A stretch of 64,000 bases of DNA, from positions 6,014,001-6,078,000 of the forward strand of contig OZ176052.1 in assembly GCA_964247055.1 (NCBI GenBank), written 5' to 3'. A program made the position numbers and the translations under genes. The stretch is from Paragordius varius (taxonomy: Eukaryota > Animalia > Nematomorpha). Below are positions 1 to 57,700 of the stretch, piece after piece. Each line of letters starts with the position of its first letter. Within the stretch, counting starts at the first letter, position 1. The notes under the pieces were generated by a model, which saw only the letters and a program-made list of their open reading frames with translations, was not told where the DNA came from and did not search any database.

Positions 1-1121
1 ACATCATTTCCGTATCAATGATTCTTTTGAGAGAGAAAAAATTGAAGGTATATATATTTTTTTTAAAGTTTAATTCAAAATATTATACGATAACAAAAAT
101 CGATATTCAAGTGAAATATAGAATAATTTTTACGATGGTCAATACACTCTTATCTTATAACTTTGTGAAGAATCACTATTGGAAAGATAGATATAATTTA
201 TCATTTAAAAGTTTTTAAATTTATACACATATCTCTTATGCAACATTTCATTATATTTGAAACACAATTTATCAAATACAAAGATGATATTAGGCTGTTT
301 GCCATATCAGAGGTCATTTCTAAAGTTGTTGAACCGTAACAGATTTAATACCAAGCCCAAGGTGTAAGCACCACAAGATATATTTTCAGTAAATGCGTAT
401 TTAAGAATAGTTATTTAAGCACTTTTATTAAATTTCGTTGGAACTGGTGTCAATGGTTAAATATTTTTTGGTTTCATTTTTGATAAAAATCTAAAAAACA
501 TATCATAGTAGTTTTGAATTATCTCGGGTTCTTTAATGTATTGTGCCATGTGAAATGGGTATCGTACATCCACATATCGGTTATAATCGCTATTTAATCC
601 TAAAATATGCAATCGATAAAAGTCAAAAAAATGGGAACGGATTTTTTACTCATTACTCGCAAAATTGAATATTTTATGAGTTTAAAATTATTTCATGTGC
701 TGAACCATTATATCTGATGGCTAAATTATACCATAGTTAAGGGGACATAGAATTCGAAATTAAGTATTATCAATCTTCGAAATCCATATACCTTTAAACT
801 TAAATTGTAAAATTAAAGTGAATATCAGAAAATAATTAATTAATTTTACAGATACTAATAGATTATCCACTTTTTCTGTTTTCATATTTTTGTTAAATTT
901 GGATACAAAGTGTTTGTCATGTTGGAAAATTTATAGGATTCAAAATTTTGCGACCTCCAGGTTATCCACCAATTGATACAACTGGTATTATTTTATAATT
1001 AAAATAATAATTTTTAACTTTTGTGGGATCTTACTTTTTTTAATGATTGTATTAAAAGATAGTTAGTTCCAAACTCGGCTCTTCATGACGAGTACCATGT
1101 CTGTTTAATGTTTTTCTACAG

Positions 1122-1559: not shown

Positions 1560-2151
1560 TCTATATATTTATAAAAATGGAAAATGCTGGCTTTGTGATC
1601 TGGTACCGGAAAACCGGTAGACCCATTCAAATCCAAACATCGAAAATATATAATCATTAATGAATGCCCCGACAATAGCTTCGCCCTTTTTTTGAAATAG
1701 GCCCCCAGTTCGGGCCCACCCCGTGTGAAAAACGGGTTTTTGTTGAAAACACAAGTCCACAAAAATTGTGTCTTTGAGACAATTTTCCGGAGAACGTGTT
1801 GGACCATTCAATTTCAAATATAATTTTTGTTTACTTATTTTCGATTGCGCCGAACATAGTCGTCTCGCATTTTTTGATTTAGACCCTCTTTTTACCCGCT
1901 CTCCCCGTAAAATTCCATTTTTTTCATAAAAAATCCACAAAAATAATTTTTTAAATCTATTTTTCCCCCAAGTAAACAATATATTAGTTTGAATGCACCG
2001 TTTTAAAGCTCCTATAAAATCATATTTAAATAATGTGTCGAAATAATCCACATATGTGGATCATTTTATTGTCCCTTATTTCAAATAGCCCCCCCCCCCA
2101 GAAGTCCGAAGGACTTCCTCGGGCTGCGTAGCAGCACGAGATTTACGCTAG
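1560..2151 (+). mobile_element. Non-autonomous Helitron-like element (short form)
   Basis: Starts A|TCTATATATTTATAAAA; ends with GC-rich hairpin CTCGGGCTGC-GTA-GCAGCACGAG then CTAG|T; both ends match the inverted copy at 23348-25695. Confidence 0.8.
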
Positions 2152-2269
2152 TTAGTAATAAAAGGAATTAAGCATGCGCAAATGAATTTTTCCTTATCAG
2201 CTTGATCGGCCCGCCGATAACCCATTAAATATTTACAAACCGCTGGGCTTAAAAATTATCGTTTGCGGG

Positions 2270-3213
2270 CAAAAACACTTGTGAACATTCTCAATTGATT
2301 CACATATGTGGAACATGGTTCAAGTATTAAAAGTGGTGATATCAAGTGAAAGAGTGTGTGCGCTCTAATAAACTGCACAACGGCGAAGACTCTAAAGTGC
2401 AAGAGTATTCAATGATTAATCAATTCAAACTTACGGTTGGGAGAGGTATTACATGTATCAAATAAATAACCAATGAATGTCTAGCAGCAATGGGAAAGAA
2501 CAAAAAACTCAGTAATGGGCCTAATTTAAATTAACAATAAATCGAAAATCGCAAACTTGCGAAATTTTAACGTCACGAAAAAAATCATTTTTGAATCAAA
2601 TTGAGACGGTTGATGAGAAATAACTTTAATTTGTAAATCCAAGCAGAAAAAAGGTGGGTTTCATCTTGTCAAGCCCTTCATCTACAATATGCCCAAATCG
2701 CTTCGGCAATAACCATGCTCTGTATCTTGTATGACCATAGTCATGTTAAGTATTATAAACTTTTGAGGTCCCGATATTGTTAATGCAAAACACTATAATA
2801 TAACTAATTAAAACCATGCATTAATTAAAAATCAAGCGGAATGAACTAAACATGGCAAAGCGATTTTGATACATGACAATGCTTCATCTCTTACACCAAA
2901 ACTTGTGAAATACATCTTAAAATTGCTTCAATGGGAATTTTAATCCGCTTTACTCTCTTGTGCTGATGCCGTCTGACTAATGCAACTTCGTTAATGGGAC
3001 ACATCCTATGAGCAAAACTTCAAGAAGTTTGAATGGCTTAGAGAATGGTTTGCCGCAAAAGTCAATGAATTTTTCTGGTCCGGCATATATATATGAGCAG
3101 AGGAAATTGCGTAGAAGCCGATGTCCAATATTAGAAATATATAAATAATTGATTTGCTTTCAAAATTACATGTGTTTTTACCAAAAAGCTAACTTATGAA
3201 TACCCCTGGTATG
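2270..3213 (+). mobile_element. Decayed mariner (Mos1-like) transposase remnant
   Basis: Frameshifted translation gives PNRFG..TMLC, ILIHDNAS, LREWFAAK and KCVEAD, collinear with mariner DD34D transposases; many stops. Confidence 0.8.
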
Positions 3214-5454
3214 CGTCTTTATCATCAACTATATTCAAAAAAATCAACATCCCAAATATGAAAGGTACTCTTAAATTTGACACAATAATATATATTATAT
3301 AATACAGCCACTGAACCAATATTTGTGAAGAAAAATATATCAGTATTCTCATCGTATGTTTTGGGGCTTATGATTCTTATAAGAAAGTTTTTCCTGTTTA
3401 TGATGATTGTTCCATTTCGGAATTAAAAAAATTGCTAAATTATGCTGCAATAATATTTTCGGTTGAAGCCAAAGGTTTCGAGCCAAAATACACTAACGAG
3501 CACTATTTATCCATATCTATTTAAATAGTAAGATTTTGTCAGTTGTGTATGAGATTTTTCATTCAATTTGTTACATATTTGACACCTAATAACCTTTTGG
3601 GGTAGTTTCATAATCCATGGCCATTTAAAATTTAATTTTAACATTAAGCTAAATTCAAAAGTATGTTTTCTCTTTGGTCTTTTAGGCGCATGATACAAAA
3701 AATATTTTTTTAAAAAATGTAAAATTGTAAAAAAATCCTCATCTCCAACTTTTTCGCCTCTATGTTTTATTATTTTTTTAATCGCTAATGCTATGGTTAA
3801 AAATATAATTAAATAATTTTGAATTCAGATTATTACCGCGAATTTTTTGATATATTAATTTAATACAGTTGCTAGCTTCTTCCACGTTTTTAATCTATCC
3901 GAATTCGGGGCTATGGGAGTTAAAAGACTTTAAAAATGATAAGTTTATCTAATAGATAAAAAAACAACTTTCAAAACGTAGTTTTGGGCACTGCCTAAAA
4001 CGCCATCGCTTACCAAAAAATAAAAATGTAATGAAGTGTTGATTGAACATTATTTAGTTTTTAAAAATGTATCCTGACGAGATATATATATTCTTATAGA
4101 ATGTATCTCTCTTTGAGCTTTTAGTTTTGGCCCTTAATAGTGTTTAAAATAATTTTTTACGATTGCTAAGTGTTACATATCAGAAAATGGCAAAATTTAG
4201 CATTTAAAATTTTTTTCATTGAATCTTGGCATGCATTTATTTAAAGAGAGCTAGCCTAGATAGGGCGAAAAACTTGGGGCGTTCGAAGCCCACATCTAAA
4301 AATTAAGATTTTTTAATAATATTGTTTTGTTTTTAAATGCAGTTTATGATATATTTTTTGGCATGTAGCATTTAGCTTTCATCAAAATGAATTTATGTAA
4401 CAAAGTGCGCAAATTATGCCATTTTATGATATGGTGAACTTACCACAAAATTGTAAATAATTTTATCACTCCACCATGAAAATCTTAATTCATTTTCCTA
4501 TCAAATATTTTTGATCAGGACACTGTGTATATAATCATTTTGCAGTGTGCTAGAAATGGTATCAAAATAATGTTTCTTTTTAATATAATGAGTGAATAAA
4601 TGAATTAACCTTTTTGATTACAAATTCGTTTGCCCTTATATTTAATGTATCAAATACAATTAATACTTAATTTTAATAAGGGAGGCAAAGATCATTTAGG
4701 GGATATTTATAGAAAAGCGCTATCAATTATGTAACAAATTGATATTTAAGCCTGTTTCAGTCTTACTTAAGATCCTAAAACGTTTAATACGTTTATACCC
4801 AAAATTTTCGGAATGATACCCGTTTATTCCTAAAAAATAATCTACACAATGTTAATTTTTACATTTAGGGAAATGTTTAATTTGTATAAATTATTAATGA
4901 TTTTATTATATTTAGGATTTAGCACATTTTTGCGAAATTTCATGTTTCCAAACGAAAGAGTGCCAATTTATACTTTTTATGTAAATGATAATCAGCAAAA
5001 TATAGCAGCATCGTTTTAAATATTGTTAAGTTAAGTTTGTTGCTTTTAGTCATGCATCTATTATATAATAAAAATAATTAGATTTATGAACTGACAATAA
5101 TAATAAGAAAACATTTAACAAGTTTGCGTTACCTTTTGCAATTTTTTGGTACATGAATTGTATTATATAGATAATTTTTGGCCTCTTTGTCTTTCTGTAA
5201 GAAATACATTTTTATGTTAAAATAACCATATTTGTATAATAACTCTTTTGTGTATATACAATTAATCCAAACATTCACCTGTATTTTTTGTAGCGTTTTG
5301 TGTAGAGAGTTCATGTATTAAAACTTTAAATTAAAAAATTTACAAACAAAAATAGGATTTCATAAATAGTGGATTAAATCTAACATACATATTTAATTCC
5401 TATTGTTATCCATACTATAATATCTTTTGCAAATCTTTTTCATGCATTTTTAGA

Positions 5455-34100: not shown

Positions 34101-36832
34101 CAATTGATGCAATCTTCATTTTGAGAAGATTGCAAGAGAATTATTTAGCAAAAAATAAAAAACTTTATCGTGTTTTTATTGATTTACAAAGAGCCTTTGA
34201 TTGTATCCCCAGGAAGTTAACATTCACACTACGAGCCAAAAACGTAGATGATTGGATAATTAAATCAATAGAAATGATGTACTACAAAACAACAAACTGC
34301 GTCAGGTTAACACTAGGCAACACAGCTTTTGTTCCAAACGAATCTGGTCTTCATCAAGGGTCCATCCTAAGCCCTCTACTCTTCATTTTAATAATGGATT
34401 ACCTAACAAAAGATATAAAACAAGGCCCACCATGGGAACTTATCTATGCGGACGACATTGTCCTCACCGCAACATCAATGGAAGAATTAAATTAAAAGTA
34501 CAACACATGGAAATCACACTTAGAAAAGGGTGGAATGAAGATAAATATAAGCAAAACAAAGGTGCTAATAACGGGTGAAACTGTATATGAACGACCTAAG
34601 TTTCCATGTGAAGTAAGTGATTTAGATGTTAAACTCAATTCAATATGTACATCATGCAATAAGCGGGTACACAAAAAGTGCTCGCTTATAAAAGGGATAT
34701 TAATCAACAATGATAAATTTATATGTGAATCATGAAAAAATAAAACAATAAATCACTCATTCACTTCAATAAAATACTTTTATATGGCAGACGCCAAAAT
34801 CGAATTGGTAAATAATAGTTGGGCGATGTCATACATTACCTAGGTGGAATAAACCAATCAGTTAAATATAGATCCCAACAGGCTTGGGTAAAATATCATC
34901 AACTTAAATTTGTGCTCAAAAATAAACATATATCTCCAAAAAACAAAGGTTTGATTTACAAAGCCGGCATACGTCCCATACTCCTGTATGGAAGCGAGAC
35001 TTGGCCGATGACAGATTCAATTGAGAAAAAACTAATGAACATAGAAAAACGGATGCTAAATTTATTCCACCCCAATAAGTCAAATTCAAATTAACATCAA
35101 CTGTACCAAATCGAACCTTTAATTATGCTCAGAAAAAATAGGCTTAGATATTTCGGACACATCAAACGTGCTCCAGAACAATGGACATAAAATTTTATCC
35201 CTACATCCCGAAGGTAACAATCACAGGGGCAGACCAACATTTAACTTGCCAAAATTGATGATAACGCCTGGCAGGATCGCAAATATTACAGACAGCTTCT
35301 ATACGGATACAATGGCTAGCCATTACACAAAGACGATAAGATTTATATCAACCATTTTTCATTCAAAAACAACATTTTTCCAAGCAAACGCAATATTTTT
35401 ACGGAACATTTTTTCGGTTGTCTTTGCTTGAAAACATTGTCTTTTATTGAAAAAATGTTGGTTTTGACTAAAAAATTGAATACCATTATTTTTATTATTT
35501 GAAATATTAGAAGAAAAAGTTTACTATAAAGCAATATATAACTGGTTAAAAAAACGGTTCATATTTATATTTTAGTCAACGTAGAAAACTCTTCTATAAT
35601 AATCATTCTATATTTATCAATTAAAAAATGTAATGAATCAATCAGTATTAATATAATGTTATAATTAATAAGGGATACTCACATAAGCCAAACTCAAAAT
35701 AAATTTTCCTTTGGTATCAAAACTCGTGGTTTCAGATCCATCTTTAACATTGTAAACGTGTATTATGCCATTATAACTGCCCACTGCTATACTTTGTCCA
35801 TCAGGTGATAGGCGAACGCACCAACTTTCCACTAATGTACAGGAAAAATTGAAATTATACGGACAAAACGTAAAAATATAATAACAATTTTAAAAAAAAC
35901 AACCATACTTTATTAAGCCCTAATTATCCTATATAAATTATACAGATACAAGCGTACAATACAAAATGGGTTGGGTTATCAATTTACATCTATATTATAT
36001 CTTTTTTAGCTTAAAACAATCAATTATTTTAAAAATAATCAAGATTTAAAAAGTATGGTAGTCTTTTGTAAAAAAATATTTGTCTTTATAAAAATACGTT
36101 TTGTCCGTATAATTTCAATTTTTACTATGTTATAAATTTACTTTTTTATAAAATTATTATTTAAAAATATACAGTGGAACGCCCCTATAATGACGCCAAT
36201 TGTGAGAAAATAGTTAGGGACCATTATACAAATTCTTTTTTATAAAAAATATATAAAATTAACACTTTGATACTAATTTATCCAAAAAAGTAAATACATA
36301 AAAAAATGTTAAAGGATAATTTTTATTAATTAAAAATATTGATGCAAAAAGAGATTTATTAAAAAATCGATAAAGCCATTATATACTTGGACCTGGCTCA
36401 ATTTTTCGAATTTCAGAACCTGACTCTACATCCCATAATTCTATCACACCATCTAATGCGCTAGATGCCAAAACTAAAATTTTGTAAGATTAAGTTATAG
36501 AACCATTATTTTTCATATCAAGGTCCAAAGAATGCACGGCTAGAAAATGACCTTTTAAGATATGTGCAAGCGATAATTCTTCATCATCCCTGTTTTTTTA
36601 TATAATAATCCAAGATAATACCAAATCCAAATTTTAACAGTTTCATCCAAAGATGCGGTTGCAATATAATCAGTATTAGTGTTATCATTATGGCCCCAAA
36701 CTACATCCCATATTCCATTTTCATGGGCTGAAAAATAATGTTAAATATAAATATTTTATCCAAATTTTAATAAGAAACCATTAAATATTTTCAAAATATA
36801 CCGTGTTCCTTTTTGTAAATGAGATTAACCAT
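31162..36832 (-). CDS. WDR61: WD repeat protein 61 (Ski8), multi-exon
   Basis: Exons give [122 protein letters not shown]; stop TGA at 31162. Confidence 0.95.
32638..32932. mobile_element. hAT (Charlie/Buster-like) MITE in WDR61 intron
   Basis: TIR CAGGGGGGTCCAAC/GTTGAAGAGCCTTG; near-perfect 8-bp TSD CACTAGAG/CATTAGAG. Confidence 0.75.
33433..35335 (+). mobile_element. Decayed RTE-type non-LTR retrotransposon with inverted 5' part (WDR61 intron)
   Basis: RT motifs [12 protein letters not shown] and YADDIV, frameshifted, on + from ~33872; upstream RT-region sequence on minus strand at 33433-33845. Confidence 0.9.
35844..36123. mobile_element. Inverted-repeat MITE in WDR61 intron; relatives near 29170-29400, 41460-41670 and 62560-62765
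   Basis: Arms AAAAATTGAAATTATACGGACAAAACGTA / TACGTTTTGTCCGTATAATTTCAATTTTT. Confidence 0.6.
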
Positions 36833-36860: not shown

Positions 36861-39800
36861 ATGATGGATTTAAATTTAAGCACTACTTTTATTGGAGTTG
36901 AACCCATTCCCGAATATAAAGTCGATGAGATTAAATATGATGGAACAGAAATAATTAAACAGTTTTTAGTTATGTTAATATTTATATAGCCCATTGTCAT
37001 TTGATGATTACATAAAGAAATTATCTAATCAAACCTCAGTCGAAGACAATAAAGTTAAAGATGTTACCAAATCCCCCTTAAATCCAGATCAAGAGGCAAT
37101 AATTGAAAAACTTAGGTATGATAATATTTTTATCGCAGAAATGCTCTTACAGAAATTAATGTTTTAGTTGACGTCCTTAAAATTACCAAACAGCAACAAT
37201 ATTTAGCCCTTGATTATATTGCAAATGAAAGTAGTGATCTAAAAACTACCAATATACTTAATAAGAAAAAGGTGTAATAATTATATTTTTATATTAATAA
37301 TTATTTGCTTATTTATATTTTTAATCTATAAGAATCTTTTACAAGCATCTGCTATACTGGCAAACGGATTTGACAGATTAAAATCGGATCTTACTACCAG
37401 TGAATACAAAAACGATACAGAAGAACTTTTTGCGCTTAGAAGTTTTTGGAAAATTAAAAAAGTCAAAGAAAAAATATATGGAGACCTCAGCCTTAAGTCA
37501 AGTACAACATTTTTGAGTTATTGATCGACAAAGTTTTATTATTGTTTAAAGGATAGTTGAATACTTATTTTTTATATTTATCTTGCAAAATATGTTATGT
37601 AATGGTTCTGAAGGGTTTCTGCTTTGATTTAAAAATTTCATCTTTACTGCCAAATATTTTTTCTTGTTTTTTGCTAAAAAGTTTGCAAAAATTAGATCAA
37701 ATAAAATTAATTAATTTTATATGTATTTGATTACAATGTGGCAAATTTTAAATATGATTACTATGAACTCAAGACGTTGAACAGGTAATGCCTCTTTATT
37801 TTAATATAAACATATTCATTAATAATTATTTCTTTCTTAATAATATTTTCAAACATTTTATAGTCAAATTTGCGTAAAACACTTCAAATTTTTTTAACAA
37901 ATTTGATATGAATGAGCTGTTGATAATTTTTTAGTTAATAAAAAAAATACTATTTTGTGTTTAGTTGGTTCCACATATTTCGCAAATGGGACATTTGAAG
38001 TTAAAAAAGATACGTCCGCAAAAAGCAACAACCAATTTAAAATATATTTTCCCAAAAATATTGATACAACACCTCTTCACTTACATATCAACATAAAAAA
38101 TTTTGGTAAAAAATTTTGGATTACTAAATCGTTTTTTTAATTTTTAGTTTAACTATTTCATTTATAAAAAGGTATTTAGTATTGATTTTGATTAAATTTT
38201 ATTATAGATAGTAAAATTTTATCCGAAAACTTTATTTCTATGATAATTTTGATAGTATCATCAAGAGTATATAGCCATATAAGTATCTAATAATTTATTC
38301 ATGAGTATCAGAATAATATTTACGTTAAAATTTGATTCCCTTGTGTACAACTAATGATTTTACAGATCATTAGGAAACTGGCCTTTGCCGTTAGCGCATT
38401 TTCATGCCCCGGCCAACACCACGGGGAGGTGGCAATAGGACTTTGTTGGCCCAATAGTGTGGAACACACACTGAAAATATTCGAAAATATTTTAGAAAAC
38501 AGGCTGAGAAAATTTATAAACTTAGATTCGAATCAGTTTGCATTCCGTCCAAACAGTAGCACAATTGATCCCTTGTTCATCCTAAGACGCTTACAAGAAA
38601 AATATCTAGAAAAGAAACAAAAGCTATACCATGTCTTTGTAGATCTGGAACGTGCGTTTGACCAAATACCACGCTCTACAATTCAATGGGCACTACGTAA
38701 AAAGGGAATAGAAGAACATACTATACAAATTTTATTACTACTCTATAAAAATACAACAACCAACGTTAAAACCAATATTGGCAATACAAACGATTTCCCA
38801 ACAAACGCTGGACTACACCAGGGTTCAGTCCTAAGTCCACTCCTTTTTATTACTATAATGGATGCGGCAATGCAAGACATAAGAAGTGAATGCCCTTGGG
38901 AAATGTTATTCGCCGACGACCTCGTGATAACGACACGATCATGGGATCAACTGGTAAATACATATTCCAAGTGGAAGAAATGCCTTGAACAATATGGAAT
39001 GATCATAAACGCCACAAAAACAAAAATAATGATAACGGGTGAAAGTGAAACACCCAGATACCCCTGTTCCATTTGCAGTAAGGAAGTACGTTCAAATTCC
39101 ATTAAATGCATATCTTGTCAATTGTGGGTACACAAAAAGTGCTCTAAAATAAAAGACAAGTTAACAAATGTAATAAATTTTAAATGCTTAAATTGCTTAG
39201 ACCCAAGCAATAAAAATTTTAATCGACCAAAGCTACTTAACATTGATGGACATGACATCGAATTGGTTGACTCTTTCGTATACCTAGGAGATGTCATATC
39301 ATCTCAGGGAAGCCCACAAAAGGCTATCAAAAGAAGAATACAACAAGGTTGGATAAAATATAATCAATTAAAATATGTTTTCCAAAACAAAAATGTTAAC
39401 AATCGTAATAAATGGTATCTTTACAAGGCAGGAATAAGACCTGCTCTTACCTATGGTTCTGAAACCTGGGCATTAAACAAAACAAATCAAACAAAACTCC
39501 TAACCAGTGAGAATCGAATACTCCAAAGCTGCTTTCGTACGCCAGAAATACCAATTTTCATTAAAGAAAACGATAAAATCGATTATATAATTCAAACAAA
39601 CAGATTGCGTCTCTACGGTCATACTCAGAGAAGAGACGCCACCCATCCTTTAAAAACTGTTGATAACATTAATGTTGATGGCAATAGAAGAAAGGGACGA
39701 CCACTCTTTTCTTATAATGATAATATAAAAATGGACTTGAATCAACGTAGCCTTTCCACAGAACAATGTAAAGATCGTAATATATGGAGGAAACTACTTC

Positions 39801-42800
39801 GTGGATACAAAACTCCGAATATGGAGTCCTAAAATTATCCATCCAAAATTTGATTCAAGGTTCACATTTTTATTTCCAAATTATTTAATTAAATTAATTT
39901 AAGTTTTGCTCAATTTGCACAATTATTCTTTTCTATCATATATATAGAAAGTGGTGAAATAATTAGCACAAATATAAATTTGGCCTCAAATGATTCGGTA
40001 ATTAAATTAGTTGGAACCAATATACAGTCAACAAGTACTTCAACTAATCAAACTTTAATAAACAAAACACTGGAATCCATACAAAATAATATTTTTTATC
40101 AAGAAATTTTATATTCGGTATAAATTTGTTTTATCAAATTTTTAACATTGATGTGAAATTAACTATTTTAAGGCATTTTGTACTGTATTTAGGTTGGTAG
40201 GGAAGCCCTTGAAAACAACAATGTTTTTGAATACAATCCAATCATAAAACCAAACTTTTTTTCATGTCCGGTATTTATATAATTTCATATAAAACTTTAC
40301 CCTTAAATCAAAATTTTATTTGATAATTAATAAATATGTAATAATGTAAATTTGAATTTTATTTGACTATAGCTTTTTGGTAAATATTGGGTGGAAATTT
40401 TTACAGAAAAATGCCAGGATATTGATTTAAGACACCAACCTATCTCTAATGAAGTATATCATTTTTTAAATAGTTATTGTGTTAAATATTTATATTTCTA
40501 AAATAAAAAACTGTGTACCTATATTTAACATCCACATTTTGATTATTTTATGCATAAATTAGTTTATACAAAAATATATTTGAGTGATTATACTTTGTAC
40601 TTTTATAAAATTCTAACCATAAAATTTAATCGACTATATGGTATAATCTAATAAAGTGTCATATTTTTCAATATACAAAAATAATTTTACGTTCTATATA
40701 ACCCTAAAATCATGAAAACTTTATTTATGATATAAGCCCAAAGATATAAAATCATCAGCATTATCTTCACTAAAAATGGCAGTTCAATCAAAGTTGCTTC
40801 AACAATTTCAAACTTTGTTCAAGGTAGCTAAACCCGTTCCAAGTTGTGCAAATATTTCACAAACTAATCGCCGACGTTTAGCGGGTCCACATTGCCTGAG
40901 ATACGATGACACCAGATGTTATGGTTATATTTTTTATAATCTAAAATTAATGGTTTTTTCAAGTTTTCTTGGTATCATGTATTTTTCATAATCGTTTAAT
41001 TTTTCATGGAAAGGAAAGAAGGAATTATGGAAAGATGTATAAAAGAATAATATTCACGCTTTAATTTAAATGACTTGCATGAAACGATTGCATGTAAACC
41101 ACGAACTAATACACTGACTAAAATTACTGTATCTCATATTTATAAATTAATTGGATGTGATTAAAATTTTTTGCTCGATACAACATAATTAGAATATTTT
41201 TGTTATTACATAAATATTAGCTTGTTGATAAAAATCAAAATCCATTTCAATTTTTTAACTTTCATATACTAGGTACAGTAATTTACAATATTTTATTTAA
41301 CCCTTTACTTTATTAACAATATCAATATATTATCCATATATCGTATAAATTATTGAGATTAAAGTCAAAATTTTGATACTTGCTAGTATCTATGATTAGC
41401 TAATAAATATTATGAGAAATAAAGTATTAAAATAAAATTTATTTACATTAATAATAGATAGACGAAACGTAAAAACTAAAAGCCTAATATTTTTTAAAAG
41501 GATAACCGTATTTTTTAAAACCTTGATTCATTGTATAATTATTATAGATTGTATGATTTAGTATAATATTACCAGTTTACATCTCTAATCCCAATTTTAC
41601 CACCCAAAACGATGAGTTAACTATGGTTGTCTTTTATAAAAATATGATTGTCTTTTAGCATTTACGTTATATCAGTGTATATAATCAATTTTTGCTGTAA
41701 TTTCACTTTTCTTTTTAGGTAATCCAACTAATGTCCCCAAGCATCCGCGCCCACTCTACGAGTTACAGACGGATTTGGAAGACGAACTCCTTCTATTAGC
41801 CAATACTAACAATAATGATAATAATGAAGGAAATTTTGATTTAAGTTTTGAAGATTTTTCTTTGCTGGACGGAGGTAGGAGATCAATCCATTCTGGAATT
41901 TCCACTCCATTACAAATTTTAAACAACGATCATTATGACGAGCCTAAAATTGAAGGTATATTAGCAATATTACTGTGATATAAAATTCCCTAAATGTGGG
42001 GAAAACGCATGGCTTAATATCAGCACCATGACTTTTAGAGAAAAATATTAAAATTTAATTGCATAATTCAATTATTAACATTACCAAACTAGTAAGGTTG
42101 TGGGAAGGTATACCCAACTTTAAACCATTAATTAAAAAGTAGGATTTTATTTAAAAATCAGAAAAGTGCATGATGATCACCATTAGCTAATTGGTTGCCA
42201 TGAACTTTTATAAATCTTCTTAAATATTGATTTTGAAAATGTAAAAATTATTATTAAGGCGTTACCTGTAAACTTTTTGTCAGTTTTTTATACTATCGTT
42301 AGCTCAAGAAACAAATTCTCTTTACTTAACATTAGATCCAGTTATACAATTAAACCTTTGACCTTGGACACACATAAAAAGAAGCGATTAAGCAACTATT
42401 TTTATGGTGTAATTTTTTTAAGCTCTGCATATTTATATTTTGCGACCCTTTCGGGGTTAGATGATGGGAAAAATAGCGAAAAATGTGATGAAAATCAATT
42501 ACCAAAAACCAATAATATTTCAAAAAGGGTATACTATTTTATAAATCGTGTATTACATATAATTAAACTTTAATACTGTATTTGTTCTAATCATATTAAT
42601 TTTATATAACAGAATATTTGATATTTATGGAATAATTTTAAAATGATAAAGAGCTAAATAACTATTTGAAGAAGACCGTATAAACACATATTTTACAAAC
42701 GTTTATAATATTATATCAATGAGTTTCATTAATTTTTTAATTGAATATTATGAATATAAATTAATTATGATTGAGGCAATAATTGAATTAGGTCATTACG

Positions 42801-54757: not shown

Positions 54758-57700
54758 CTATTCTGAATCATTTAATATTGTTTTACTCCTAATTATTGGC
54801 TCCCCTTGAATCTCATCCTTATTATATTCTAAACATTATCCTCAAGATTTAATATTCCTAAATAATCAATTTATTTATGTTAAAAAATCAGTCAATTTAT
54901 AAGAAAAATCCAAAATTTCTATAAAATTTTTATTTGTATATACGCTATATTACAAGATGTTTTGATTGAAATTAAATTTATGACATTAACACTACCAATT
55001 CATTTATAAAAGGATATATGGGTTGCATCATTTGTATGGTCAAAATTCCTAATTGTTCCAGTAAATAAACAAATATATATTTTTGGTGAAAACATCTAAA
55101 TTAACCTCTAAAACGTCCCAACAATATATATAACCATTTTCACTTCCATTGTATGCATATTGGTCATCATGGCTCAATGCATTATCGATTTGAAATCCAC
55201 TGTTTGTTAGAACATTTTGTAAATTATTAGGCATGATCAAAGCTTTAGAAGAAGAATCATTTGGTACTGTGTATTCCGCTAACATTTGGCCATTTCCTTA
55301 TATAAAAAAATATAGATATATAAGGCCAACAAAGTCCTATTGCCACATTCCCGCGGTTTGGTTGGGGCATGAAAATGCGCTAACGGCAAAGGTGAGTTAA
55401 TGATTTTGATCATCCATAATTAGCAAAAAATGCTCACAAAGATAATTTTTAAACAAGTTTTCAAAAAGTCTATACAATTGGCAAAAACTAGAAAAAAATG
55501 TTATATTATATTTGTATTTTACAGTTATCAGTTCGAAATATAATAAATTATTTTTAATGCCGGTATATATTTCGATTTTGGCCCGTCAAGTTCTTTGAGT
55601 CAAAAATGCAGACCGCGAAGCCACTTGTTTGGACACCCCGTAATCCACATTTTTCAAGTATTGTTACAAAAAGGCAACCTATCTGTAATTGGATGTTTTT
55701 GGGGGTTACTCGATATATTTACGATTAAAGAAATACTGCTAAAAAGGTATCAAATTAGCTGAAATTTTTTAAATTCAAATAAACATTAACATAGGTGAAA
55801 AATTTCACATCAATAATTCAGAATTTTTTCAAAGCTTTTAACCACACTGATTCCATCATTTGAGCCAAAATAAACGGCGTAAATCTTTTTAGCACATACT
55901 GATATGATGGACTTTTCAAATTTTAAACCTAGTTTTAAATAATTCATAATGGTAGCATTGGTATCGCCAAATAATTTTAAAGGGCCGAAAAAGATATTTT
56001 TCTTGTCTCTAAGGCCATAATACTGATAAAACCAAAAAAAAGCATTTTTCGGGCAGCGATTTGAGTACCGCTAGTTTAGAGATTAGTGTTTTTTACCGAG
56101 TTTAACCCTATGTATAATTAAAACAATAAAAAAATTAAACATTTTTTTTCAAAATTTTAGAATAAAATTAAACGTTATATATTATTAAAAAACTGAATAT
56201 TATAGGAAATTCACTTATATACATTAATTACACTTGACAACAAATCTTAACTTTTTTTAACTGCCATTCTTGTAAATTTAAAATTTATTTCATTAAAGTA
56301 CATAATTAGTATATCTGAAAAGAAAATTGGTCTAGCATGCAAGGATTTTTTTATATTAGAGTTTATCGATAATTTTTGGCCCCGATTTAACATTAAACTT
56401 GAAATTTCGAAAATTAAAAGTTTTAGATATAAAGCCATGTATTTTATATCATTCGAAAGAGCGCAAAAAACTGCATCTTTTAAATGATAGTAAGTCATTT
56501 AAATCAATCGGATGTAAAAGTTATTTGGATTTAAATGGTCGAAATTTTCAATCCTTAAATAAGTCAAGACTTTTCACAGACAAACTAATTTGAAAATCAT
56601 ATAAATTATTTTAATATAATTATTAGGGTTGTATTAGTATTTAATTTGCAAAAAATGTTTGAAAAAGCTTTTGGTTTGCTTTTTTAATAAAAATTATTAT
56701 TATCATAAATATTTTACCTAGTGGATACTAAAATGCATAGTTATAGCTATAAATTTATTACATAATGGCTATAAAAGATCAAAAATACCTTAAATTTTGT
56801 TTTTATCTTTAAAATTTCGAAATTATCAGCCTCGTAAAGAAAATAAATTAATATTGATGATATGGTAATTTTTAAAAAACAAAAAAACTGAAAAATGGCT
56901 GTTTTGAGTGACATAAAAGCAATAAAAAAATGTTTAAATTAAAAAAACTTTCTTGTGTTATCTTTTTTGGACATTCATCACCATCTAAACAAAGTTTGGG
57001 CTATTTTCATCCATTAGTTTTAAAAATATAATAATTTAAAAAAAATGCTCTCGCTTCGCGCGTTTGTCGCTCTTTGTGTCCAATATTAACTGTCGATGTA
57101 ATACATATTAGTATGCATTTTATAGATTTTTTAATACTCTTTCGAATGATATATTACAAATGGGCATTACTTGTATATTTTCAAAGAAAAACATTTTTTA
57201 GTAAAATTTTGATAAAGAGGGCGCATAATCAAAAAAATCAAATTATGCAAAATTCTTCCAACGAGTTATAAATTTTATTTCAGATTTACTGTTAAAAAGA
57301 TACTAAATATCAGAAAATGCAAAAAACTCGAGTGGCAGAAAAATTTGTTGTCCAGTGTTATTGAGCCATAAATTTTTTCGCATCAGGGTCATTATGGGGT
57401 AGGGGTTACACTGTATTTAAAACCCAAAATAGTAATACAGTCATGTATCCTTTACCTTATCAAAAATTTATTTTTTTCCGTTAAATGGGTATAAATATTT
57501 GGTAAAGAATAGAAAAAACAAGAGCTCTATGGTAATTATTATGCTTTTTTGATGGATATTGTTAATACCATAGAGCTCTTGTTTTTTCCATTCTTTACCA
57601 AATATTTATTATACTCAATTAACAAAAGAAAATAAATTTTTGATAAAATAAAGGATACATGACTGTAAAAAACTGCTAATTAGTTAAAAAATACTAAAAA

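Follow-up and report, generated by a model that had tools for sequence, protein, structure and literature searches.

Two pieces of one retrotransposon family lie head to head in the window (the whole 64,000-nucleotide stretch of Paragordius varius DNA analysed here): an inverted 5′ tip on the minus strand and a direct 3′ segment on the plus strand, separated by a short filler and flanked by a target-site duplication (TSD). Their coordinates are given in Table 1. The 12-mer of the TSD was confirmed, and a 12-bp repeat pair of this kind is expected by chance in the window at a rate near 2e-6 per position pair; the TSD encloses both parts and no TSD surrounds either part alone, which bears out the original prediction of a single insertion. 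Both insertion flanks are unique in the genome, and a search of the genome for a paralogous empty site returned none.

The inverted piece had been taken for the family's 5′ 113 nt copied to the exact 5′ end, and so it is: it matches nt 1–113 of full-length copies at 97–98% identity with G1 first, and those copies run on past nt 113. No other copy in the genome ends at nt 113. The direct segment is 97.8% identical to the intact copy L036 over 1383 nt and contains a Pfam RVT_1 match (6.5e-30). It carries the open reading frame (ORF) from about codon 543 without stop codons (reverse transcriptase (RT) domain, PHD/C1-like zinc finger, and C-terminal region); the ORF stop lies at 39830–39832, followed by a 12-nt 3′ UTR ending ATCCATCC. 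Nucleotides 114–1956 are absent; the loss takes in what remains of the 5′ UTR, the endonuclease domain, whose skipping was foreseen, and the linker that precedes the RT domain. The original prediction placed G1 within 1–2 nt of the RT segment; family homology in fact starts at 38460–38462, so 8–10 nt of filler intervene, and its first 6 nt reverse-complement tip nt 14–19. An in-frame ORF that starts at an ATG at 38354 and crosses the inverted tip is attributed to chance.

Table 1. Features of the composite insertion and its ribozyme. Ribozyme elements were read straight off the minus strand and are numbered in nt from 38451.
Feature	Position	Strand	Size	Description
TSD, upstream copy	38327–38338		12 bp	Identical 12-mer at 39845–39856; 3′ end 38338 is the presumed primer of the inverted cDNA
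Inverted 5′ tip	38339–38451	−		Element nt 1–113: ribozyme plus 43 nt of 5′ UTR including a hairpin
HDV-like ribozyme (candidate)	38382–38451	−	70 nt	G1 = 38451; candidate catalytic C58 = 38394; RF01787, R1 and covariation
P1	nt 1–7 with 35–41	−	7 bp	
P2	nt 13–21 with 63–70	−	8 bp	Single bulged A
P3	nt 22–24 with 32–34	−	3 bp	
L3		−		UCCCCGU
P1.1	C26–G43 and C27–G42	−		
P4		−	4 bp	GAAA cap
J4/2		−		G-C-U-A-A, with C58 at window 38394
Junction filler	38452–38459	+	8–10 nt	May reach 38461; no family homology
Direct 3′ segment	38460–39844	+		Element nt 1957–3339
TSD, downstream copy	39845–39856		12 bp	Starts right after the family 3′ terminus

The element is about 3.34 kb long, with full-length copies of 3311–3346 bp, and its copies are 96–99% identical. 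Its single ORF encodes an AP-type endonuclease (Exo_endo_phos), a reverse transcriptase (RVT_1), and a PHD-like finger; the intact ORF has 998 aa, and two of eight full-length copies keep an intact ORF (998–1027 codons). With two intact ORFs and such copy identity, the family looks recently active. The 3′ UTR measures 12 nt and ends in (ATCC)2–4 without poly(A); microsatellite tails are known from RTEs (PMC6007223). TSDs are 10–16 bp long in 12 copies of the family, and those of RTE elements peak at 10–12 bp (PMC4245944). Size, single ORF, 3′ end, and TSD length thus fit the RTE clade, a placement by architecture rather than by phylogeny with references, and the family is called RTE-like here. 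Its nearest database proteins are 32–35% identical, on contigs of about 3.2–3.9 kb, and a protein atlas and homologue search for a clade name returned only unnamed clusters.

Full-length copies bearing the tip sequence, proposed as a check by the original prediction, start at exactly the window's G1 and have the same RT and 3′ end; tip and RT segment therefore belong to one RTE-like family. The 3′ terminus is the same in the window copy and eight full-length copies, and in L008 and L011, two copies with internal deletions, the tip is linked to this tail as well. G1 is the genomic 5′ end of the family: the TSD abuts it in 8/8 full-length copies examined, and 36 of 70 tip-bearing loci begin exactly at nt 1, the remainder lacking at most the first 21 nt.

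The first 70 nt of the tip form a well-supported candidate HDV-like ribozyme, with putative self-cleavage 5′ of G1. They match Rfam drz-Agam-1 (RF01787) at 39.1 bits (E 1.3e-5 in a 3-kb search), above the curated gathering score of 37 bits; the HDV-F-prausnitzii and HDV_ribozyme models match weakly at the same place, and our own model R1 scores the ribozyme at 100.6 bits. The claim that every HDV/CPEB3 element can be folded on the minus strand from 38451 agrees with this, each listed element being present. Minimum-free-energy folding of the 113 nt recovers only P1, P3, and P4, with a z-score of −1.9 that falls short of significance, as expected for a pseudoknot.

The genome carries at least 124 ribozyme model matches, and other copies score up to 50.6 bits (RF01787). 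Comparison of three or four ribozyme families of this genome shows covariation that backs P1, P2, and P4. In the nested double pseudoknot 92.1% of cells are paired, against 31–48% with the partners slid, and double-sided changes occur at 10 pairs (three in P1, five in P2, and two in P4); P1 was left out of the aligning model, yet three of its pairs show such changes. The P4 hairpin of family C is wholly different, J4/2 reads CUAA in family A, CGAA in B, and CCAA in C, and L3 across families is UCCNCGY.

A G1–C pair in place of the usual U had been noted at the cleavage site. This is true of the window copy, but it is a minority variant: about five copies of the RTE-like family have it, the window included, and the family's common form is G1–U. 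Among the aligned ribozymes this pair is GU in 14, GC in 11, and AU in 3, and G1–C is standard in two other ribozyme families (B and C), whose spread suggests that it is tolerated. The window copy nonetheless departs from the G1–U wobble of the HDV fold, and this is counted against the explanation preferred below.

HDV-like ribozymes head RTE and other non-LTR elements, including the drz-Agam family, R2, Baggins, and L1Tc (Ruminski et al. 2011, as relayed in PMC6765202 and PMC4908430; for R2, PMC3774820). The present candidate resembles them in its nested double pseudoknot, its drz-Agam-1 match, and a predicted cleavage site at the first element base; release from a longer host transcript, described for the known ones, is assumed here. 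It differs in its compact 70-nt form, in its very AT-rich host genome, and in the presence there of the two families with G1–C as standard. In contigs of the nearest foreign relatives (proteins 33–35% identical) neither Rfam nor our own model found a ribozyme in the 48–141 nt upstream of the gene, a search that is uninformative because this sequence is short and the contigs may be cut.

The same inverted topology occurs in seven independent copies (the window, L010, L015, L020, L021/L025, L027, and L029). An inverted tip accompanies six of the 40 best 3′ ends in a census made from coordinates, in which 19 copies have no tip close by and may be either 5′-truncated or inverted further inside. 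In L010, L020, and L027, too, a TSD surrounds the whole composite, and in these three and the window the inverted piece directly follows the upstream TSD, attached to its 3′ end. Internal priming took place at nt 113–192 in six of the seven events, and the RNA is predicted to be unstructured from about nt 103 on. Microhomology at the priming site is minimal: the window has a terminal C that can pair with G114, and three of its last four nt match; other copies have 0–2 nt.

The window breakpoints, at nt 113 and 1957, leave a 1843-nt gap instead of the adjacent breakpoints expected of twin priming, and breakpoints are 1.6–2.7 kb apart in 6/7 events. Only L015 has adjacent breakpoints, at 416 and 422, the classical twin-priming signature. 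The junction lies exactly at G1 in four of the seven copies, and the fillers at all four (the window and three others) copy tip nt 7–28; other junctions are at tip nt 6 or 13. Amplification of a composite by itself was rejected: a junction is common only to L021 and L025, whose flanks match too, which indicates segmental duplication.

The geometry of the insertion is that of twin priming. It is highly probable that window 38339–39844 is the 5′-inverted, internally deleted product of a single retrotransposition by a young RTE-like non-LTR element, formed through twin priming on a ribozyme-cut RNA. For the cleavage, the order of steps, and the joining we infer the following course. The HDV-like ribozyme of the first 70 nt would cut the element RNA from a longer transcript, leaving an RNA that begins at G1. 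A bottom-strand nick would prime the usual cDNA from the 3′ tail, reaching only nt 1957. A top-strand nick 12 bp away would provide a 3′ end (38338) that anneals to the unstructured 5′ UTR at nt 113/114, downstream of the ribozyme, and a second cDNA primed there would run off the RNA 5′ end at G1. Joining of the two cDNA ends via a short filler copied from the tip would yield inverted nt 1–113, filler, and direct nt 1957–3339 within one 12-bp duplication. Long overhangs are thought necessary for twin priming (PMC4245944). Counted against this course are the minimal microhomology at the priming site, the gap of nt 114–1956, far larger than the minor losses or duplications usually left by twin priming in L1, and the templated filler, which goes beyond simple end joining.

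The gap and the filler bear on a rival account that mainly concerns how the cDNA ends were joined and can coexist with twin priming. The first cDNA would leave the RNA at nt 1957 and the reverse transcriptase or a repair polymerase would jump to the 3′ end of a separate minus-strand tip cDNA, or polymerase-theta-type end joining would act with templated insertions; the tip cDNA could have had a primer other than the top-strand nick. Templated fillers at every G1 junction speak for such a template switch, as do the large gap in 6/7 events and the junctions at tip nt 6 or 13, which look as if the invading end had annealed just inside the tip cDNA. In four copies, however, the inverted piece is joined directly to the upstream TSD at its 3′ end, as predicted by top-strand priming, and a free-floating cDNA fails to explain it; we regard this account as quite improbable. 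Still less credible is a normal full-length insertion with later inversion of its first 113 nt and deletion of nt 114–1956. Recombination or replication errors can invert segments, but nothing specific points to them here: several breaks would be needed, of which one would have to hit G1 precisely and another the edge of the TSD, the TSD is intact, and the topology is shared by seven independent copies, in four of which the junction coincides with G1. Later rearrangement of the window copy was rejected on these grounds. Two independent head-to-head insertions, a solo 5′ fragment and a 5′-truncated copy, are also rejected as extremely improbable: solo tip fragments do exist (e.g. window 55324–55392), but one TSD encloses both parts, a 113-nt 5′ fragment would lack the 3′ tail required for target-primed reverse transcription, and the pattern recurs at other loci with enclosing TSDs.

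Twin priming was described for human L1, where it inverts the 5′ part of the insert (Ostertag and Kazazian 2001, as summarised in PMC4245944), and in human cells 5′ inversions were found almost only with L1 (PMC4245944). Shared with L1 are one TSD (10–16 bp here) round inverted 5′ and direct 3′ segments, the joining of the inverted segment to the upstream TSD, and, in L015, adjacent breakpoints. Unlike L1, the element here is RTE-like, its priming point is confined to nt 113–192, its breakpoints are mostly (6/7 events) 1.6–2.7 kb apart, its fillers are templated from the tip, and its second cDNA reaches the true RNA 5′ end set by the putative ribozyme. Short, internally deleted R2 SIDEs keep the 5′ ribozyme and 3′ end (PMC3414825). 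They are resembled by the direct internal-deletion copies L008, L011, and L017 and by an abundant family of about 240 nt, which combines tip nt 1–173 with a tail of RTE type and has TSDs that abut G1; the short copies here come from dispersed RTE-like elements and are not rDNA-specific. Since the tail of the 240-nt family terminates in TGA repeats, the family may depend on another RTE family as its autonomous partner. Ribozyme-headed RTE elements and 5′ inversion of this kind were already known; the recurrence of the flip, the priming point at nt 113–192, and the fillers copied from tip nt 7–28 are new.

Instead of a chance result of random annealing within the RNA, the flip might be the footprint of an integration design in which an element protein holds an RNA 5′ module (ribozyme, hairpin, about 100 nt; nt 1 to about 170) at the second-strand nick, a tentative reading that we consider rather doubtful. 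Holding of the 5′ RNA at the second-strand nick has been proposed for R2 and serves as its model. With the module held there, the top-strand 3′ end would prime repeatedly at nt 113–192. Direct internal-deletion boundaries lie at nt 154 and 171, a third (L017) at nt 248, and that of the 240-nt family at nt 173. If true, the reading would explain why priming points cluster so tightly, why the boundaries of internal deletions and of the 240-nt family match them, and why so many insertions have an inverted tip.

The locus contributes one more well-supported candidate HDV-like ribozyme setting an RTE-type 5′ end, and several families within a single genome supply good covariation for it. Of greater use is what it says about mechanism: an invertebrate RTE-like family often shows 5′ inversions, which have been documented chiefly for human L1. 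Because the RNA 5′ end to which the second cDNA runs is known to the base, each junction would record the reverse transcriptase at the template end, as templated fillers or as joins at nt 1, 6, or 13. The clustered priming zone is a hint of a 5′ RNA module at the second-strand nick.

The window copy carries an inverted RTE-like tip and a direct segment between identical 12-mers (38327-38338 and 39845-39856), which lie immediately outside both ends of the composite. The rate of such pairs in the window is about 2e-6 per position pair, and neither flank recurs elsewhere in the genome; a single 12-bp TSD encloses both parts, as originally noted. No sequence intervenes between the inverted tip and the 3' end of the upstream TSD copy, the point at which top-strand nicking, 12 bp away from the nick in the bottom strand, would expose a primer; this geometry is that of twin priming. 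The distance between G1 (the inferred cleavage site, 38451) and the RT segment had been put at 1-2 nt, which is slightly off: 8-10 nt intervene, and they are non-family sequence at that position. Skipping of the endonuclease region is borne out: the missing nt 114-1956 take in that domain together with the remaining 5' UTR before it and the linker after it, to about codon 543. The direct segment, which has no stop codons, starts at this codon, close to the Pfam RT domain start. An older RTE-like element with broken RT reading frames lies 3 kb upstream of the insertion (34121-35431, plus strand).

Features of the window copy (window coordinates), its ribozyme (element nt) and rearranged family members (element nt)
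Feature	Position	Strand	Detail
Inverted tip	38339-38451	-	nt 1-113 (to 116 with microhomology), BLAST against intact copy
Direct segment	38460-38462 to 39844	+	nt 1957-3339, 97.8% identity, BLAST against intact copy
P1	nt 1-7 with 35-41	-	sequence read directly
P2	nt 13-21 with 63-70	-	one bulged A; sequence read directly
P3	nt 22-24 with 32-34	-	sequence read directly
L3		-	UCCCCGU; sequence read directly
P1.1	C26/C27 with G43/G42	-	sequence read directly
P4		-	4 bp, GAAA cap; sequence read directly
J4/2	C58 = window 38394	-	G-C-U-A-A; sequence read directly
Flip, window copy (L001)	inverted nt 1-113, direct from nt 1957		filler copied from tip nt 14-19
Flip, L010	inverted nt 1-192, direct from nt 2399		filler copied from tip nt 7-17
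Flip, L015	inverted nt 1-416, direct from nt 422		filler copied from tip nt 9-28
Flip, L020	inverted nt 13-162, direct from nt 2665
Flip, L021/L025	inverted nt 13-192, direct from nt 1812-1816
Flip, L027	inverted nt 1-171, direct from nt 2915		filler copied from tip nt 14-17
Flip, L029	inverted nt 6-150, direct from nt 2673
Direct internal deletion, L008	nt 1-154 + 3289-3339		young family
Direct internal deletion, L011	nt 1-171 + 2987-3339		young family
Direct internal deletion, L017	nt 7-248 + 3260-3337		young family

Every element of the HDV fold listed originally can be read on the minus strand at 38382-38451. In a 3-kb Rfam search, RF01787 (drz-Agam-1) matches this interval with 39.1 bits (gathering score 37, E 1.3e-5), and two further HDV families give weak matches there. 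Folding by energy alone yields just P1, P3 and P4, without significance, as a pseudoknot would lead one to expect. In a 31-copy alignment, the specified double pseudoknot has 92.1% of cells paired, versus 31-48% with the partners slid. Ten of its pairs have changes on both sides, three of them in P1 (G2-C to A-U, C3-G to A-U, A6-U to U-A), a helix outside the covariance model used for aligning. Self-cleavage 5' of G1 is inferred. The unusual G1-C pair is true of the window copy but is a minority variant, found in about five copies of its family (window included), most of which have G1-U. G1-C is the norm in two other ribozyme families of the genome, so it appears to be tolerated.

At least 124 ribozyme copies are counted in the genome with our own model. 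The genome has at least three clearly distinct ribozyme families as well as a fourth, divergent form, each heading repeats that differ in their upstream sequences; in family C the P4 hairpin is entirely different and longer. A second copy of the window's family (55324-55392, plus strand, 81 bits with R1, a covariance model built here) matches only nt 1-75 at 89% identity, and is therefore a decayed solo 5' fragment, the element body being absent nearby.

The genome (110.6 Mb, 44 contigs) contains many copies of the 113-nt piece (38451 down to 38339), with 89-100% identity among the 40 scored of 173 first-look candidates. Oriented copies share their sequence from G1 on, differ completely upstream and run on past nt 113. 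Full-length RTE-like copies with this 5' sequence were found at eight extended loci, all starting at G1; they measure 3311-3346 bp, end in ATCC repeats and have 10-16 bp TSDs that lie flush with G1 at one end (8/8) and with the ATCC tail at the opposite end. Two further loci contain extra inserted DNA. Exact nt-1 starts were seen at 36 of 70 tip-bearing loci (the others lack at most the first 21 nt); these starts and the TSDs touching G1 show G1 to be the apparent start of the transposing RNA. The window's inverted junction is a second, independent footprint of that start.

The single ORF is intact in two copies; its 998-residue product contains Exo_endo_phos, RVT_1 and a weak PHD/C1-like zinc finger, and shows 32-35% identity to the closest database proteins, which are unnamed. 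The Cys/His-rich finger, just past the RT domain (residues 744-787 in the intact copy, L036:1794-4787, minus strand; window about 39065-39200), is common to the nearest unnamed relatives. Size, single ORF, 12-nt 3' UTR, microsatellite tail and TSD length all appear to fit the RTE clade, in which TSD lengths peak at 10-12 bp (PMC4245944) and microsatellite tails have been described (PMC6007223).

The flip is recurrent. An inverted tip abuts a direct 3' segment at 8 of the 30 best tip-bearing loci, which count as seven independent events because L021 and L025 have common flanks. These two loci (G000:C2:1404026 and G000:C2:1372162, about 32 kb apart), identical in composite and flanks, represent a segmental duplication rather than two events. 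The whole composite lies inside a 10-12 bp TSD in the window, L010, L020 and L027, and L015 has the adjacent breakpoints of the classical twin-priming signature. Of the 40 best 3' ends, matched to tips by coordinate, 14 were full-length or lacked at most the first 16 nt (start nt 1-17), six were inverted-tip composites (five independent events) and one was a direct internal deletion; the remaining 19 had no tip nearby by coordinates and may be 5'-truncated or inverted further inside. In human cells, 5' inversions are described almost only for L1 and are linked to long TSD overhangs (PMC4245944); the 10-16 bp TSDs of the present family fit this idea.

Two other arrangements were observed. At L046, a 77-nt form of family C (G000:C4:1567493-1567969), RT-like coding sequence lies directly upstream in opposite orientation within the 200-nt flank, so head-to-head topology may exist in other families too. 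L052 (G000:C6:3678768-3679260) is tail-to-head: nt 3146-3338 of one copy are followed by 22 nt and then the first 67 nt of another on the same strand.

Fillers are tip-derived at all four junctions that reach G1; the other junctions, at tip nt 6 or 13, have fillers of 0-4 nt. Together these features point to joining by invasion and template switch: the first cDNA's end would invade the tip cDNA within its last ~30 nt, where reverse transcriptase or a repair polymerase would switch template. The tetranucleotide GCCA, common to tip nt 2-5 and 19-22, may guide the switch.

Internal priming is confined to nt 113-192 in six of seven events, within an allowed range extending to 1.8-2.9 kb (about 2e-9 under a uniform model, calculated post hoc). 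AT content peaks at nt 201-400 of the element, outside this zone, and the RNA is predicted to be unstructured from about nt 103 on. The left breakpoints of two direct internal deletions (L008, L011) fall in the same zone and that of L017 lies beyond it. A similar boundary is seen in an abundant, older non-autonomous family about 240 nt long (L075-L114, e.g. L087 and L102; L022-L024; L028), in which nt 1-173 (ribozyme plus 5' UTR) are followed by an RTE-type tail that ends in TGA repeats. Its TSDs abut G1, it resembles the R2 SIDEs (PMC3414825), and it may have another RTE family as autonomous partner. That the priming-zone and filler regularities reflect a 5' module is considered unlikely.

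HDV-like ribozymes at RTE 5' ends have been described since 2011 (Ruminski et al., as cited in PMC6765202 and PMC4908430) and twin priming since 2001 (as cited in PMC4245944). The window insertion is a real and unusually clean example of these known phenomena; what is added is how often the flip occurs in an RTE-like family, together with its confined priming zone and its templated fillers.
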